63,624 nucleotides of DNA from Octopus bimaculoides (Eukaryota), in NCBI RefSeq assembly GCF_001194135.2, contig NC_068998.1, positions 47,712,032 through 47,775,655 on the forward strand. Reading direction: 5' to 3'. Below the pieces are notes generated by a model. It was not told the DNA's origin. It searched no databases and worked only from the letters and a program-made list of their open reading frames with translations. The position numbers were made by a program, and so were the translations under genes. Of this stretch, positions 40,154 to 51,400 are shown piece by piece; position 1 is the first letter of the stretch, and each line of letters begins with the position of its first letter.

Positions 40154-41316
40154 TATATATATTCAATTAGAAGTTACGTTAGCCTCATGAAGGGTAATTA
40201 GGGTTCAATGTCTAATATTTTAGGGTAATTGATTTTCTTAAAATAATAGGTGTATATATAAAGCCATATAGTTTATATTCATATAAAAGAAAAAAAAAAA
40301 AAAAAAAAAAAAGAAAATGGAGACTGAATTTAATAATTGTTTATTATTAACAACAAATCAATCATCATCCCTTACAGCTGTTTTAATTAATACTCGGTGA
40401 ATTAATTAAATATTAAATTCATATGCCCTGAACATAATACCTTCAGTCGGTAAAAAATATACCCTTGGATGTTTTATATATGTGTGTTTATGGAATCTTT
40501 ATAGCAGACTGGATGATACTGTTTATGATTTGTATTTTTATGTGTTCAGGCGAGGGTTTTGCAGGTTGGTTGGCGATAAGATAGAGCAGGTAAATAGAAT
40601 TAGAGTGGATTTGGTAGACGGAAACTGAAAGAAAGCTGTCATATATATATATATATATATATACATACAGACATGCTAGCAATGCATCCCGGCATTGCCC
40701 GGCTGTTATGACCTACAACCATATTGTATTATTTGTTCCTTTCTTATGGGCAGAATCAGCACAGCTGATATACAGTAAACTGGATTACTGGTGCAATGGA
40801 AGTTACTGCTTGTTTAAAAGTGAAGTGGGGGAGGGTACAATTTGAATGGGTTTGCATGAAAGTGCTTTCTGTTCTTAAGAAGCATCACAAACTATGTATT
40901 GGTTCATTGTATAAAAGAGGGTTAATACAATTTTGCCCCAAAATCACGTTTTCAAAATTTAGTTTCCCCACCGCAATTTCTTAAATTGTAACTTCTTTAC
41001 GAATTGGTTTTTTTTCTATCCTTGTAGTAAAATACAGAGATTACAAACCTGGGGAATATTATAATGAAGAGTGTTCTACATTAGTATATTCGTTTTTTTT
41101 TTAATATGCAGTATATCTAGGAATACATTATCAAATGTTGCTATTGTAAGATAGTGATATGAAGGAAATTTGATTGCCATTTCTAGCATGTGAAATTGCT
41201 ATGCAGAAACTCCCATATTATGTCACAATGATGCTTGAATAATTTCTTCAACTGAATTTTTTAATTTTGAAGACACTGAGGACTTCTGAGCAGAAAAAAA
41301 AAAAAAAAAAAAAAAA

Positions 41317-44394: not shown

Positions 44395-44641
44395 TTTTTT
44401 CTTTTTTGGAAGAAATAATGATTGAATATAATAAAATTTAAACCTTTATTTTTTTTCTTCTCTTTTTTTGTTATCCAATAACCAAAGTATTGGAAATACA
44501 CATTAAAAAATAACATAATTTAAAATGGTCCGCTACAGATGCTACCAACTAGCGGCATCCGTCTTTGATAACACAGACATACAAACACACACATACACTC
44601 GTGCAAATCAACTCGTTCACTCAGTCATCCTCATCTTTCAC

Positions 44642-45418
44642 TTATGAAGATTTCTTCTTTTTACTTTTCTTTTTTGACAGAGTTTCTGTATTTTCTGTAA
44701 AATCCACATCATCAGTTTTTTTCTTCTCCTTCAACAGAGTCGTTGATTTCCCATCTTCCTCTTCAGCATCCAACTTCTTTTTCTTCTTCTTCTTTGATGG
44801 AGTCTGCGTATTTACAACTTCCACCTCTGCTTCATCTTCTTCATCGTCATCACCAGATTTCTTCTTCTTCTTTTTCAACAAAGGAGTTTCTATATTTACA
44901 ACCTCTGCTTCCTCTTCCTCTTCAACCTTCTTTTTCTTCTTCTTCGACAAAGATGGAACTTCTATATTTACAACCTCTGCTACCTCCTCCTCCTCTTTCT
45001 TTTTCTTTTTCTTCTTCTTTGATGGACTTTCTGTATTTACAATTACTACCTCTTCTTCCTCCTCCTCCTCATCACCAGATTTCTTTTTCTTTTTCTTCTT
45101 TTTCTTTGACAAAGATGGAGTCTCCACATCATCACCGCCACCATTAACCGTTTCCATCTCCTCCACCACACTTTCATCATGCTTCTTTTTCTTCTTCTTC
45201 TTGCTCTTCTCTGTCACATCAGCCTCCTCTTCATCATCTGCCAACTTCCTCTTTTTCTTTGAAGAAATCAACTTATCACCGCTGCCGCCCTCATCATCAG
45301 GAACGCCCACCACAGTGTCACCATTGACCATAGCATTGTCCGGCAGTTCTACAATCGACAGAGACTTTTTCTTCTTTTTCCTTTCCTTCTTCTGGTGCTT
45401 GATATAAAGATTGGCAAC
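44642..45418 (-). CDS. NOP56: NOP56 terminal exon, Lys/Glu block-repeat tail
   Basis: Strong acceptor (tttctcaattttcag|GTTGCC), phase 0, 777 nt to TAA. In frame with track ORF 44642-45331. AATAAA on the minus strand at 44445-44450. Confidence 0.9.
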   Translation of the reverse strand, partial: VANLYIKHQKKERKKKKKSLSIVELPDNAMVNGDTVVGVPDDEGGSGDKLISSKKKRKLADDEEEADVTEKSKKKKKKKHDESVVEEMETVNGGGDDVETPSLSKKKKKKKKKSGDEEEEEEEVVIVNTESPSKKKKKKKKEEEEVAEVVNIEVPSLSKKKKKKVEEEEEAEVVNIETPLLKKKKKKSGDDDEEDEAEVEVVNTQTPSKKKKKKKLDAEEEDGKSTTLLKEKKKTDDVDFTENTETLSKKKSKKKKSS

Positions 45419-48400
45419 CTGAAAATTGAGAAAGAAAAACTAATTAGACTTGACAGCAGTAATTAGATATAACTTATTAACAATAAAAAAAAGCAATCAG
45501 TGAAATGGATAAGACCAGGTTTAATGTTCTTTAACACGTTGTTGTTGGCACTCTGTTGTTTACGACGTCGAGGGTTCCAGTTGATCCGATCAACGGAACA
45601 GCCTGCTCGTGAAATTGGCTGAGCACTCCACAGATACGTGCACCCTTAACGTAGTTCTCGGGGATATTCAGCGTGACAAGGCTGACCCTTTGAATTACAA
45701 GCATAACAGAAACAGGAAGAGTGAGAGAAAGTTGTGGTGAAAGAGTACAGCAGGGTTCGCCACCATCCCCTGCAAGGAATCGAAACCGCAATCCTATGAC
45801 CAAGAGTCTACTGCCCTAACCACTGGGCCATTGCACCTCCACTCTTTAATACCAAATATACAGTAATTAAACATGTAATAATTTGTTCTAATTTTGGCAC
45901 TAGACTAGCAATTTTTCGAGGGGAAGGGGAAGTTAAATTCCATAGACACCATTGTTCCATTGATGTTTATTCCATCAACAGTGGAAAGATTAAAGGCAAA
46001 AACAATCCTGGCAGATTTGTATCCAGAACATAAAGCCGATCGAAATGCCGCTAGGTATATTGTCTGAAATATTAACAATTCTGCCAAATTGCTGCCTTGA
46101 GATACAATGTAATAATCAAGCAGTAATTAGGTGTGATGTAACAATTAGACAAACTGGCATTAGTAAAGTCATCCAGCCGCAGAAACCACACCAAGCAGAC
46201 ACTGCAGTTTGATGTGGTTGTCTGGCATATCAATACTAGTAGAACCGTCCAACCCATACTGACATGGAAAATTGATGTTAAATGGTGATGTTAAAATCTC
46301 AGTGAATTACTTCGCAAAAATATGACCATAGAATAGGGGGAAGTTGGAGCAACAGGACGCTGTATGATAAGACATGAAAGAATAGGGAAGGATTTTGCAT
46401 CACTTTTCCTCAGACCCAAAGCGACCACACACTGGCCATCTTTGGTCCCTGGGGTTGACTAACATATGCCAAGTTGCTGTAGCAGCAGACTCCAGCATTC
46501 TGTGCGCAAGGATGGTTTCATCATTGGAAAAGTGAGCAAAACCTAAAAGAGCACATTATACAGACATCATGTACCAATATATTTAGCCATCAACTTATTG
46601 CATCCAAAGGCTCTTTTTTTAAACGCCATATTCACACACTATCATTTATAGCTTTATCTGCCTGAGTTTCATAATTAAAAATTAATTAAGTAAATACTAA
46701 CCTCAGCCAGGGCCAGTCTCATGATATCAATGTTCTTCCTTGGCGTGGAACCTGTTTCATAATACAAAAGCCTGTCTTCTACTTGCTGCCGGAGATGTAC
46801 ACCAATCACAGAATTTGGGAAATCTGGAAAATAACAAACATCATATTTTCAATACTAACAATGAACATGTACACCAATAACAATAAACAACCATGAACAA
46901 TAGGAGGATGTACTGTTATAGCCAGTTAATGAAACAAACTGACAGCATAATAGTATACACAATTAATATAAACCCATGTGAACATACACAACAGGATTTG
47001 ATAGATGACAAAAGCAGGGGCTGCAGCAGGTTCTCTGGTCTGGTTTACACAACTGGATGCCCTTCTTAATGCCAACCACAGAAACCATACATAATAAGGG
47101 TGTTTAGCAGTTGACTCTTTTAATTTAAGTAAAGGAATTCACAAAGGTATGAGTGAATAGGCACAGATTCTGTAAAAACAATAGATGAAAATCACATCAC
47201 CACAGATGATCAGACAAATTTATTGCTGCAACCCATTAGCACTTACACTGGCTATTATGTGGCCCAAATTGGCCAGATCCAGCATCTCATACCTACCCAA
47301 CAATGCTCTTCTAAAAACAACCACATCAAAATGTTGAAGTTATATAACATAATACGTGATTAATTCAAAACAATGTTAGGAAGGTCATTCAGCCGTAAAA
47401 ACTGCCAAAAACAGACACAGAAGTCTGGTGCAATCTTCTACCTGGCCAGTTCCTGTCGAACTGTCCAACCCATACCAGCATGGAAGACTTATGTTTGACT
47501 GAGGAATCCGAATTCTAAAAGGCTAAACCAACAGAAAAATTGCCAAAGCCAGCATCATCTCTGGTAGACTTCTTAAGACTCTTTGGGCAAAGAAGGGTCT
47601 TAGCCCTGAAACCCCGTTGAAGGTCTACAGAATTTCTTTATCATTTACTAATTAGTTGTATGCTCTAGAAAGACCCAAAAACAAGTCAACCCCCGACGCC
47701 ATCTTACTACACAGCCCTATCATTTACACTTCTAGCAATGCACCACCACCACTACTCACCTGCAAAACAATCAACCCTGGTGGCCAGAGAACATTTGTTG
47801 GCCAAAAACCGAGATATCCTGCCCTTGTTTTGGGCGCCAGCTCGCCCAATGAATGTGGAGTGAAATATTAGACCATATTTCGGTGTGTTCCCTCGCATCT
47901 TCAAGGCTCTAAAAATAGAAAATACATAGAAAGTTCAACCAAAGGAGTCATAGCAGAGCAAATGTTGTGTCTTTCTTTTACAGAAATTCTACATTTTCAA
48001 AACTGTTGCACAATATGGCACTGGATGGGGGAAGGGGGTATTGCTATGATAATTGCCTTCACATCTCCTTGGGTGGCTCCCTGCTCAAACATACAACAGC
48101 AAGTGGAATTCACAGCTGACTGATATACACAAATGCGTAAACAACAAATGGATGTATTAGGTTAACTGGCACTCTGTTGATTACAAGGGTTCCAGTTCAT
48201 TTGATCAACGGAACAGCCTGCTCATGAAATGAACATGCATGTGGCTGAGTGCTCCACACAAACACGTGTACCCTCCAGCATGACACAGAATGTGATGAGG
48301 TTGACCCTTTGAAATACAGGTAAAACTCGTTTTTGCCAGCTGAGTGAAGTGGAGCAATGTGAGAGGAAGTATCTTGCTCAAGGACACAATGTGCCATTGG

Positions 48401-51400
48401 TAATCGAGTATACGTATGTTACTTAAAGTTTTACAGGAGGTGACAGTGACTTCGAAGTTCCTGCTTGCTAGCCTTCAACAGACTGTCAGGAATACACCCA
48501 CACACAATGGGCTTCTTTCAGTTTCCATGTACCTAATCATCGACAAGGCTTCGATCAACCTGAGGCCATAGTAGAAAAAAACTGTTTCAAAGTGCCACAT
48601 AGCAGGATTGAACCAGAAACCAGGCAACTGAGAGGCAAACTCCTTACCACACAGCCATGTCCATGCAAATAGAAAGCGAAGATCTCAGGTTCACAACACT
48701 TGGAAAAACTTAAAAAAGCCCCAACAGTCCAGACTAAATATAAAAAGCTCCAAACAGAATGAACAAATTATTCCACACAACAGCACCAACTCTGTGACTG
48801 GTCATTGTATATGTCTTACCTGAAGAGTGCCTTCTCAGCTCCAAGAATCTGTAAAGTTGAAGCCGGACATTTGGCAAGATTTGTCAAACTTCCAGCATGA
48901 GAAATAAGTCGAGCACCAACCTGTCCGAAAGAAACCATTCGAAAATCAAACATTTTTATTCACAGACAAAATTAAGAACACAGCAAATGGTAGGCACCAA
49001 CTCTTGTTTGGTATACTGCCTGCCTGCCAATGCGAAACGTTGATAAAGTAGGGACCTTATTAAATACCCACCACCCATTCTGAGCCAACTTGGTTTAACC
49101 AAAGCCATTTCTTTAAACCCCGCATCACCAATTCAGACCTTTCTTTTAAATAGAAAACCTATCTATTCATACAGTTTTGAATTAACCATGCATTATCTCG
49201 TAGTTTTCAATCTTTTGATAATGCGATTGTGTTCATTTCAGAATGACATTGTAGGCAAAGTGTGAGAGACTGGATCTGGCTGGTTTAAATATTAAAGGGC
49301 TTATGTGACACCAAGTTTGGCATCAGGAAGGGCATCCACGCCAAATCAGATTGGAACCTGATGCAGCTCTTCAGTTTATCAGTCCCAGCCAAAGCTTACC
49401 CAAGTGTCACATGGCAGGACTGAACCCGAAACCATATGGTTGGGAAGCAAACCCGTTTTTAGTAACACAGCCATGCCTTTGCCTATATTCTTTTATAAAA
49501 GATCTATAATAAGACTTAACTGTCAAAGCCCACCCACATTCTGTATATGCCATTTACTATGCACCGACACATCATATTTGACAGACATTACAGAAACCCC
49601 ATTCCTGTGATAATTTTGATGAAGAGAGAAAGATTGAAATAGTTTACCGTTTCTCCGATTAATGCTGTGAGATTTGGTGCAACTTGAGACATTTTCTTTT
49701 GCAGATAATCCACAAGATTAGCTCGATAGTCAATGAGGTCGACCACACGTCTAGCAAACATCTCAATATTTAGTAAGTCTATCAGTGATATATCCATACC
49801 TGAAATAGAGATTAGATTCAAATATTAAATATAAATAGGCAATGGCATAACTGGGGTTGATTTGTTTGATTAAAAACCCTCCAGGGCAGTGCTCCGGCAT
49901 GGACGCAGCCAAATGACTGAAACAAATAAAAGAATAGCAGCAAGCACAGATATATATATATATATACACATACACACCCATATACATATATCTATATATT
50001 TACACACCCATATACATATATCTATATATTTACACACCCATATACATATATCTATCTATATATATATATATCTATATCGAGAGAGAGAGAGAGAAAAGAA
50101 GAAATCTTAAAACGTCTGCGGCCCAAATAAGTCAGCATCACTTCAGTGATGCCAAAATAGATGCACTCTAAGCAAACCATCTATTGAAATAATTAATTAA
50201 TTCACAAAATGAAAAAATTGAAAGAAAACGGTCGGAACCGAATCTCACCCATTGAAGACTTTGATGCTTTATAAACAGCCTGAGCTTTACTTCTGTCGCT
50301 AAGAATCTCTTCCATCACATCTATAGTTTCTTCTGTAATCGTTTTCCGTGACTTGATGACTTTCACTAGTTTTGCGTACAGTGCTTGTTCTGGGACAATT
50401 TTGTAAAGTTCTGGAAAATGGTAGGAATACCACTCTCTGGAGCACAACAAACAATTATATAAACATACGCACATATATACATCATCTTATCAAATCATAA
50501 AAAAACAAGCAACAACTACAACAATATCAAATGTATGTGTCCGTGGTTTCAAAAATTACTCCTGTCAAACTGTCCAACCCATGCCAGCATGGAAAAATAG
50601 ATGTTAAGAGATGGACTTTTCTCAATGCAAAGGTTTTACTTGGTAATGACCCAAACGTGATTTCATTCATTGTTTTTACACAGCAATTAACAATAAATCT
50701 GACTAATGACTATTTTTTGTATATATCCTCATAAAACTACAGAAAACTGTGGGTATTATACTCGCCCCTACCCTAAAGATTATAGTAACAGTATACAAAC
50801 ATGGAGTATGTTTATGCATGTCAGCAAACATTAAATGTACCTGGGTATAGAATTCCAGGTACAAGTAGAAGAATATGTATAGCTGTTTATGTACCAAGTT
50901 TAATTCTGCCACCACAATTAGAAATATGGTTGCAGACTCAAAGACTTGGAAATAATCAAACAATTAACTGAATTCAATTAAAACAAGGACGAACAGACCA
51001 TATATATATATCTTAACCCTTTAGTTACTCTGTCAAATGTTATGCTTATTTATTTAATTTGAATTAATCATGCATTATCTCATAGCTTCGAGATTTTGTT
51101 GGTGCAATTTGTTTATTTTCAGAATGACATTGCAAGGTATGTGAGAGAGATCAGATCTGATGGGCTGGATATGGCCAGTTTAACCCTACCAAAATATTCT
51201 ACCTGTTTTAAGTTTAAACCAGCCAGATCTGGGCTCTCCTACCTTCCTGACAATATTATTCTAAAAATAAAGTCACATCATCAAAATCTCTCATTTCATT
51301 GGACAGAATAATCGGCAAGCTGTCAGAATTGTTAGCACGCCGGGCAAAATGCTTAGCAGTATTTTGTCTGCCGTTACGTTCTGAGTTCAAATTCCACCAA

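Follow-up and report, generated by a model that had tools for sequence, protein, structure and literature searches.

The NOP56 locus and its candidate intronic RNA

We analysed a stretch of 63,624 nucleotides (nt) from Octopus bimaculoides (contig NC_068998.1; hereafter the window, with positions counted from its first letter), which carries the gene for NOP56 and, in the last coding intron of that gene, a candidate box C/D small nucleolar RNA (snoRNA) predicted to pair with the U6 small nuclear RNA (snRNA). NOP56 is encoded on the minus strand from about 56.6 to 44.6 kb of the window. Nine coding exons were mapped in the window by tblastn with O. sinensis NOP56 (P0001), and the joined exon translations are 90% identical to NOP56 of O. 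sinensis and O. vulgaris and contain the Pfam domains NOP5NT and Nop. The candidate RNA, which is 134 nt long (46534..46401, minus strand), lies on the same strand as its host in the intron joining coding exons 8 and 9 (46702..~45416), where it begins 168 nt past the 5' splice site GAG/GUUAGU and stops about 1 kb short of the last exon. An earlier, sequence-only reading of this DNA had placed the RNA in NOP56 intron 9. A NOP56 intron it is, but the number depends on exons of the 5' untranslated region (UTR).

Read from 46534 to 46401, the RNA has the 5' to 3' order CACUUUUCC-A-AUGAUGA-AAC-CAUCCUUGCGCA-CAGA-[hairpin 1]-AUGUUAGUCAACCCCAGGGA-[hairpin 2]-GU-CUGA-GGAAAAGUG (Table 1). The terminal segments CACUUUUCC (46534-46526) and GGAAAAGUG (46409-46401) form 9 bp, and an added U-A pair at 46535/46400 brings the stem to 10 bp. 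Box C is separated from the antisense element CAUCCUUGCGCA by the 3-nt spacer AAC, and the D'-like CAGA directly adjoins the base of hairpin 1 in the fold. The terminal stem and both internal hairpins are present in the minimum free energy (MFE) and the centroid folds alike (-47 kcal/mol, z = -2.5). The RNA has the features of its class, namely AUGAUGA, CUGA, a terminal stem of 9-10 bp and an antisense element of at least 10 nt that ends at CAGA, and like other members of that class it is intronic and on the sense strand of a host gene for ribosome biogenesis or translation. For a C' box, the heptamer AAGAUGG within hairpin 2 is a candidate that we rejected, since O. sinensis and O. vulgaris do not preserve it.

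Complementarity to U6

The antisense element CAUCCUUGCGCA is a perfect 12-nt reverse complement of U6 UGCGCAAGGAUG, which is nt 64-75 as counted on human U6. The Rfam U6 consensus carries the matching CUGCGCAAGGAUGACAC in upper case. By simple arithmetic about 0.7 complements of 12 nt to any part of U6 are expected in 2 x 63.6 kb, that is, in the window on both strands, so the match alone proves nothing. Nevertheless, CAUCCUUGCGCA is the sole U6 complement of at least 12 nt within the window. A strict architecture scan of both strands of the whole window (RUGAUGA, CUGA and a terminal stem of at least 5 bp) returned four candidates, among which the NOP56 RNA has the longest stem. The duplex of the 15-nt spacer from box C to CAGA with U6 has a predicted energy of -22.3 kcal/mol, whereas 2000 shuffles gave -7.9 +/- 2.0 kcal/mol and never reached this value. 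A rough estimate of the joint chance is about 2e-4. This guide-only calculation was used because RNAduplex, given the whole snoRNA against U6, returned meaningless long duplexes. The sequence-only reading had proposed that an intron of NOP56 encodes a long box C/D snoRNA directed against the U6 internal stem-loop and made up of a terminal stem, box C, AAC, a 12-nt complement, CAGA, two hairpins and box D. Every one of these elements is present, on the minus strand, and the sequence supports this part of the reading.

A further complement in NOP56, CAGGGGCCA, which matches U6 nt 57-65, was considered as a second U6 guide and rejected, since it has no box C and its window copy carries mutations. 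It belongs to a repeated intronic element of NOP56 (O. sinensis L001 at 12809, 14421 and 15993; O. vulgaris L007 at 11053 and 12623), of which the window holds a mutated copy at 53568-53663. It is probably a chance match within a repeat.

Conservation among octopuses

We found the orthologous RNA in O. sinensis (L001:25133-25266) and in O. vulgaris (L007). Compared with O. sinensis, the snoRNA is 94.8% identical, the remaining intron 62% (indels counted) and the flanking exons about 96%, so that the RNA is conserved at the level of the neighbouring coding exons. Intron DNA that can be aligned between the window and the related Octopus is about 88% identical. Seven substitutions separate the RNA from that of O. 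sinensis, none of them in box C, box D, CAGA or positions 2-12 of the guide. The first replaces a U-A pair of the terminal stem by a C.A mismatch, in O. sinensis as in O. vulgaris, with nine of ten pairs intact in all three species, and the second lies in the spacer between box C and the guide. The third changes the last guide nucleotide, beside CAGA, from A to U, and the pair with U64 is lost, so the guide is 11 nt long in O. sinensis and O. vulgaris. The fourth falls in a bulge of hairpin 1, all 13 pairs of which are intact in the three species, and the other three fall in hairpin 2, where one is in a bulge, one changes A-U to G.U and one G.U to A-U, with the pairing kept. To judge from the alignments, this pattern of substitution is that expected of a functional C/D RNA.

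Relation to SNORD23

At the Rfam gathering thresholds nothing matched the candidate. In a permissive scan the best match was SNORD23 (RF00603), at 18.6 bits (E=0.11 for a 261-nt search), carried by UGAUGA-ACCAUCCUUGC, with model positions 1-31 and 106-110 aligned. The sequence-only reading had treated the RNA as unrelated to known snoRNAs, and this view is not supported, since the best Rfam match has an identical U6-complementary 5' element. SNORD23, also known as HBII-115, is a mammalian box C/D snoRNA that still figured among the orphans in 2011 and 2015. Its interaction with U6 is known from human and mouse only (PMC5389715, PMC11863803). Chimeras of SNORD23 and U6 were obtained by crosslinking and immunoprecipitation (CLIP) in 2017, and the predicted site U64 was not found to be methylated (PMC5389715). 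In 2025 chimeric enhanced CLIP (eCLIP) again recovered Snord23-U6 chimeras, below the significance cut-off, and D' was set so that the target would be Am70 (PMC11863803), a known LARP7-dependent 2'-O-methylated nucleotide (Nm) of U6 (PMC11863803).

We recovered the SNORD23 genes from the NOP53 loci of lemur, rat and elephant (118-128 bits). The mammalian RNA reads UGAUGA-(C/U)A(C/A)C-CAUCCUUGC-UCCCCGU-[GCCCC..GGGGC hairpin]-..-[hairpin]-GGN-CUGA and is flanked by a 10-bp stem (CCCUGUGCCC/GGGCACAGGG in rat). It shares with the octopus RNA the 9-mer CAUCCUUGC, the complement of U6 nt 67-75, which is identical in both and lies near box C, at 3 nt in the octopus RNA and at 4 nt in the SNORD23 of the three mammals. 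The layout is also common to the two: a 10-bp terminal stem, box C, hairpin 1, a linker, and a hairpin 2 that adjoins GGN-CUGA. Because this second hairpin adjoins box D, neither RNA has a free D guide. Both contain a CCCC(A/U)GGG string, and both are unusually long, at 108-112 nt for SNORD23 and 134 nt for the octopus RNA. They differ in that the octopus guide extends 2-3 nt further in the 3' direction and stops at the CAGA D', where SNORD23 has UCCCCGU. The internal sequence of the octopus RNA is richer in AU, and plain sequence comparison cannot align the two.

A covariance model (R1, from alignment A3) was built from the three Octopus sequences alone and searched over the three mammalian NOP53 loci, the window and three lophotrochozoan NOP56 loci. 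Besides the copy in the window, its matches were exactly the three SNORD23 genes, which aligned end to end at 31.8, 21.2 and 19.4 bits (E = 1.7e-5, 0.0085 and 0.025), and with the filters off the top noise score in four other loci was 12.2 bits. In a six-sequence alignment (A4) 96% of the cells are paired, and 21 of the 35 pairs differ at both positions between octopus and mammals (2-7 pairs in slid controls), although this alignment was fitted to the structure, comprises two lineages and includes GC-rich mammalian sequence.

There is good evidence, from these sequence comparisons, that the octopus RNA works like SNORD23. For homology of the two the evidence is fair, and we incline to it with some reserve. 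By the Rfam gathering score the octopus RNA is not a member of SNORD23, with 18.6 bits against the 64 required. It is best described as a SNORD23-like guide of a protostome rather than as a categorically new U6 guide.

Several observations weigh against a genuine octopus snoRNA that is the counterpart of SNORD23. SNORD23 is hosted by NOP53/GLTSCR2 and the octopus RNA by NOP56. The R1 score owes much to generic C/D features and to the guide, and because U6 is invariant, convergence could yield an identical antisense core. The identity of octopus U6 across nt 64-75 is taken from the Rfam consensus. No convincing C' box was found in the octopus RNA, where AUGUUAG, right after hairpin 1, is a 4/7 match by eye. 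The conservation described above concerns three close Octopus species, in which the 40-nt flanks of the RNA are about 92% identical as well. Finally, no homologue was found in NOP56 of Haliotis rubra, Mytilus californianus, Lingula anatina or Lottia gigantea, where the scans for U6 complements and with Rfam covered Haliotis, Mytilus and Lingula, and model R1 with filters off covered all four, including Lottia. A ACATCCTTGC match in Haliotis NOP56 was considered as a homologue and rejected, being without a box C. A protein search with the 41-aa peptide of exon 8 for genomic fragments of other cephalopods gave zero matches, and the sole further cephalopod-like NOP56 match (P0004) is a transcript contig without introns.

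With these points weighed, we consider it likely that a genuine intron-encoded box C/D snoRNA is produced from the last coding intron of octopus NOP56 pre-mRNA and that it is the protostome counterpart of SNORD23. In the mechanism that we propose, the terminal stem and boxes C and D would nucleate a fibrillarin-containing small nucleolar ribonucleoprotein (snoRNP), as in the class generally. The single antisense element would then pair in vivo with U6 nt 64/65-75, as its complementarity suggests, that is, with the pentaloop and the 3' strand of the internal stem-loop, and fibrillarin would 2'-O-methylate one nucleotide of the paired segment. The region 5' of box D is predicted to be closed in a hairpin, which would make this a one-guide RNA.

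Comparison with other snoRNA families

The LARP7-associated U6 guides SNORD7, 8, 9, 10, 67 and 94 (mgU6-47, mgU6-53/53B, mgU6-77, HBII-166 and U94) resemble the octopus RNA in being intron-encoded box C/D RNAs that target U6. They are snoRNAs and not small Cajal body-specific RNAs (scaRNAs), and some are long, the Rfam SNORD94 model having 137 nt. They differ from it in their antisense elements and in their sites (A47, A53, C60, C62 and C77), and none of these six families matches the candidate in Rfam. SNORD23 is absent from the list of LARP7-associated RNAs quoted in PMC11863803. The sequence-only reading had taken the CAGGG of the octopus RNA as a LARP7-associated motif. We could not confirm this in the literature searched, where no paper contains both terms. 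By arithmetic CAGGG has a chance of about 12% of occurring in 134 nt, and it is also found in SNORD23, which contains CCCCAGGGG and CCCCUGGG, at another structural position.

The apical part of hairpin 2 in the octopus RNA (46428-46434, minus strand) reads GUGUGUG, where SNORD23 has only GUG or UUG. In vertebrate box C/D scaRNAs, GU/UG repeats of a terminal stem-loop have been described as signals for localisation to Cajal bodies.

The vertebrate snoRNAs SNORD56, SNORD57, SNORD86, SNORD110 and SNORA51 have NOP56 as host gene in common with the octopus RNA. Those with assigned targets are guides for ribosomal RNA (rRNA), and their 5' half and architecture are unlike those of the octopus RNA. 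For SNORD56 (RF00275), the human host gene of which is NOP56, a match was confined to the 3' end and scored 17.2 bits (E=0.51) against a gathering score of 36. The 13-nt CUUUGGGUCUGAG (46410-46422, minus strand) matches the 3' end of the Rfam consensus for SNORD56 at every position. This identity may be a coincidence or a trace of shared ancestry, and the resemblance is unexplained rather than informative.

Which U6 nucleotide is targeted

Counted from CAGA, the +5 rule places the fifth upstream nucleotide, a G, opposite U6 C68. The sequence-only reading had named C68 as the target. The rule does give C68, but a register specifying A70 is also live, so its firm prediction does not stand. C68 is one of two live registers because the literature ties SNORD23 to U6 and proposes Am70. 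The same reading was correct that C68 is outside the human U6 Nm sites, which are 47, 53, 54, 60, 62, 63, 70 and 77 (PMC7960923). The pentaloop of the U6 internal stem-loop comprises G65-A69 and contains C68, whereas A70 closes the loop by pairing with U64 (PMC13109388).

Several features of the octopus RNA favour the CAGA register. CAGA keeps its G-A, is unchanged among the three species and directly adjoins the foot of hairpin 1, as in the classical D'-stem-C' arrangement. The complementarity extends as far as CAGA, and the only guide substitution affects position 1, a position that is normally dispensable. Against this register, SNORD23 lacks a CUGA-like box at the aligned position (CCGU), and the register published for it specifies A70. 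In the literature that we searched, no paper mentions Cm68 or U6-C68. From the sequence we predict C68 as the methylated nucleotide, tentatively and at slightly under an even chance. By analogy with SNORD23, A70 may be the target instead, with a smaller though still substantial chance. It is rather improbable that there is no methylation or that another U6 site is used. The fuller proposal, that octopus U6 carries a Cm68 placed by a SNORD23-derived guide whose D' has shifted two nucleotides from the mammalian register, is conceivable but on balance doubtful.

If A70 is the target, the octopus RNA would be a strict functional orthologue of SNORD23 that guides U6-Am70, with C(A/U)CA two nucleotides before CAGA as the effective D' and the pairs to G65 and U64 incidental, and we rate this as possible, at about one chance in three. 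The canonical rule gives C68 for the octopus RNA, and A70 is the site proposed for SNORD23, where the published register takes D' as CCCC, one nucleotide past the duplex, in a study that reports high RiboMeth-seq scores at Am70 (PMC11863803). The guide core of SNORD23 is the same and at an equivalent distance from box C, and is followed by U-CCCC without a canonical D'. The octopus tetramer in the place of that CCCC is CACA, and in O. sinensis and O. vulgaris it has become CUCA, a 3/4 match to CUGA, by the change that also removes the U64 pair. In addition, homologous guides usually retain their target site, and Am70 is a conserved LARP7-dependent site that a 2021 review of snRNA modification leaves without an assigned guide, along with Gm54 and Cm63. 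On the other hand, neither CACA nor CUCA has the G-A dinucleotide, and in the window species the complementarity would extend into the box, while CAGA, as described, is unchanged and adjoins hairpin 1. Moreover, the SNORD23-Am70 assignment is itself below its authors' cut-off and without a knock-down test (PMC11863803), and the mammalian register is unvalidated.

It is also possible, though quite unlikely, that the snoRNP binds to the internal stem-loop of U6 but does not methylate it, and acts as a chaperone or escort by which the loop is kept open while U6 matures, for instance ahead of m2G72 installation or of U4/U6 annealing. A convincing C'/D' pair is present in neither the octopus RNA nor SNORD23, the first study of SNORD23:U6 chimeras found no methylation at the predicted site (PMC5389715), and many of the novel interactions in the later study have low methylation scores (PMC11863803). 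However, the octopus CAGA is a reasonable D' located exactly at the end of the duplex, and Am70 exists in vertebrates and requires a guide.

Very unlikely, too, is that the RNA is a functionless chance look-alike of a box C/D RNA, or a decaying snoRNA pseudogene, in the intron. The good conservation of the flanks within 40 nt among such close species would be in keeping with this, but the RNA is conserved like an exon while the remaining intron is at 62%, its substitutions spare the functional elements, the joint chance estimate is low and the architecture is common to SNORD23. The least probable reading is that of a SNORD56 derivative or dual guide, in which a 3' element, CGCUUUGGGU followed by CUGA, would target rRNA (possibly the large-subunit segment GCCCAAAGCGG) and the complement to U6 would play a secondary part; the weak 3'-end match to SNORD56 speaks for it, but that score is far under threshold and the Rfam scan found no SNORD56-like RNA in NOP56 of Haliotis, Mytilus or Lingula, and we reject it as the primary reading because CGCUUUGGGU forms the 3' arm of hairpin 2, which is conserved, and a G-to-A change in O. 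sinensis weakens the putative rRNA pairing and improves the hairpin.

Implications for SNORD23 and U6

For two decades SNORD23 was an orphan, and its link to U6 consists of a few chimeric reads and an inferred register. A protostome RNA with the SNORD23 element and layout would give independent evolutionary support for a functional SNORD23-U6 interaction, and would suggest that the bilaterian ancestor already had a guide for the tip of the U6 stem-loop. Because it has a D' box that can be recognised, which SNORD23 has not, the octopus RNA allows a sharp prediction, Cm68 versus Am70, the outcome of which would show how degenerate guides pick their site. If Cm68 proved true, one ancient U6-loop guide would have been retargeted between A70 and C68 in the course of bilaterian evolution. 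The loop region of U6 carries m2G72, the installation of which depends on neighbouring 2'-O-methyls (PMC13109388), and for this reason the methylation pattern of the loop matters for spliceosome assembly.

Other features of the window

Table 1. Coordinates of the intronic RNA, its parts and the flanking host exons in the window
Feature	Position	Strand	Basis or remark
NOP56 coding exon 8, upstream host exon	46703..46825	-	tblastn; 5' boundary (~46825) approximate
Terminal stem, 5' arm, (U)CACUUUUCC	46526..46535	-	pairs with 46400-46409
Box C, AUGAUGA	46518..46524	-	read directly; unchanged in three Octopus species
Antisense element CAUCCUUGCGCA, complement of U6 nt 64-75	46503..46514	-	complementarity, duplex energy
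Alternative D' register, CACA	46501-46504	-	would specify A70
D'-like box, CAGA	46499..46502	-	3/4 match to CUGA, G-A retained; unchanged in three Octopus species
Hairpin 1 (AUGC..GAGU.UGCUG-CUA-CAGCA.ACUU.GCAU)	46466..46498	-	MFE and centroid folds
CCCCAGGG	46447..46454	-	in the linker joining hairpins 1 and 2; unchanged in Octopus
Hairpin 2 (CCAAAG-A-UGGCCA GUGUG UGGUCG-CUUUGG)	46416..46445	-	fold; fills the position of a D guide
Box D, CUGA	46410..46413	-	read directly; unchanged in three Octopus species
Terminal stem, 3' arm, GGAAAAGUG(A)	46400..46409	-	fold
NOP56 last coding exon, K/E-rich tail, downstream host exon	44624..45415	-	tblastn; 3' splice site approximate

In the last exon of NOP56, at about 44648-44650 on the minus strand, the window has a stop codon where O. 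sinensis has a lysine, eight codons before the stop of O. sinensis, and the encoded end is ..KKKKSS*VKDEDD in the window and ..KKKKSSKVKDEED in O. sinensis. The K/E-rich tail also differs from that of O. sinensis by indels of repeat units.

Introns 1 and 2 of NOP56 contain three paralogous elements of about 125 nt on the minus strand (52816-52948, 54534-54656 and 55392-55519), with two hairpins, an ACACCA hinge and an ACA 3 nt from the end. Their sequence suggests H/ACA snoRNAs, and in Rfam they gave a weak SCARNA24-like match of 24.5 bits. At least six copies of this element are present in a tandemly expanded part of NOP56 in O. sinensis. Another H/ACA-like sequence, in intron 3 (50816-50951, minus strand), matches SNORA41 weakly over its full length (31.5 bits, E=0.087, gathering score 80), and identity to O. 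sinensis in this region is about 89%.

Outside NOP56, on the opposite strand, a box C/D sequence at 41223-41294 (plus strand) scores 29.0 bits against SNORD36, for which the gathering score is 30. It is followed by a run of about 25 A, and because this run directly adjoins it, the sequence may be a retroposed snoRNA copy. Upstream of NOP56 are three tRNA genes, at 61109-61181 (plus strand), 61965-62038 (minus strand) and 63314-63389 (minus strand), comprising two inverted tRNA-Lys(CUU) genes, distinguished by a single base (aligned position 4), and one tRNA-Asn(GUU).

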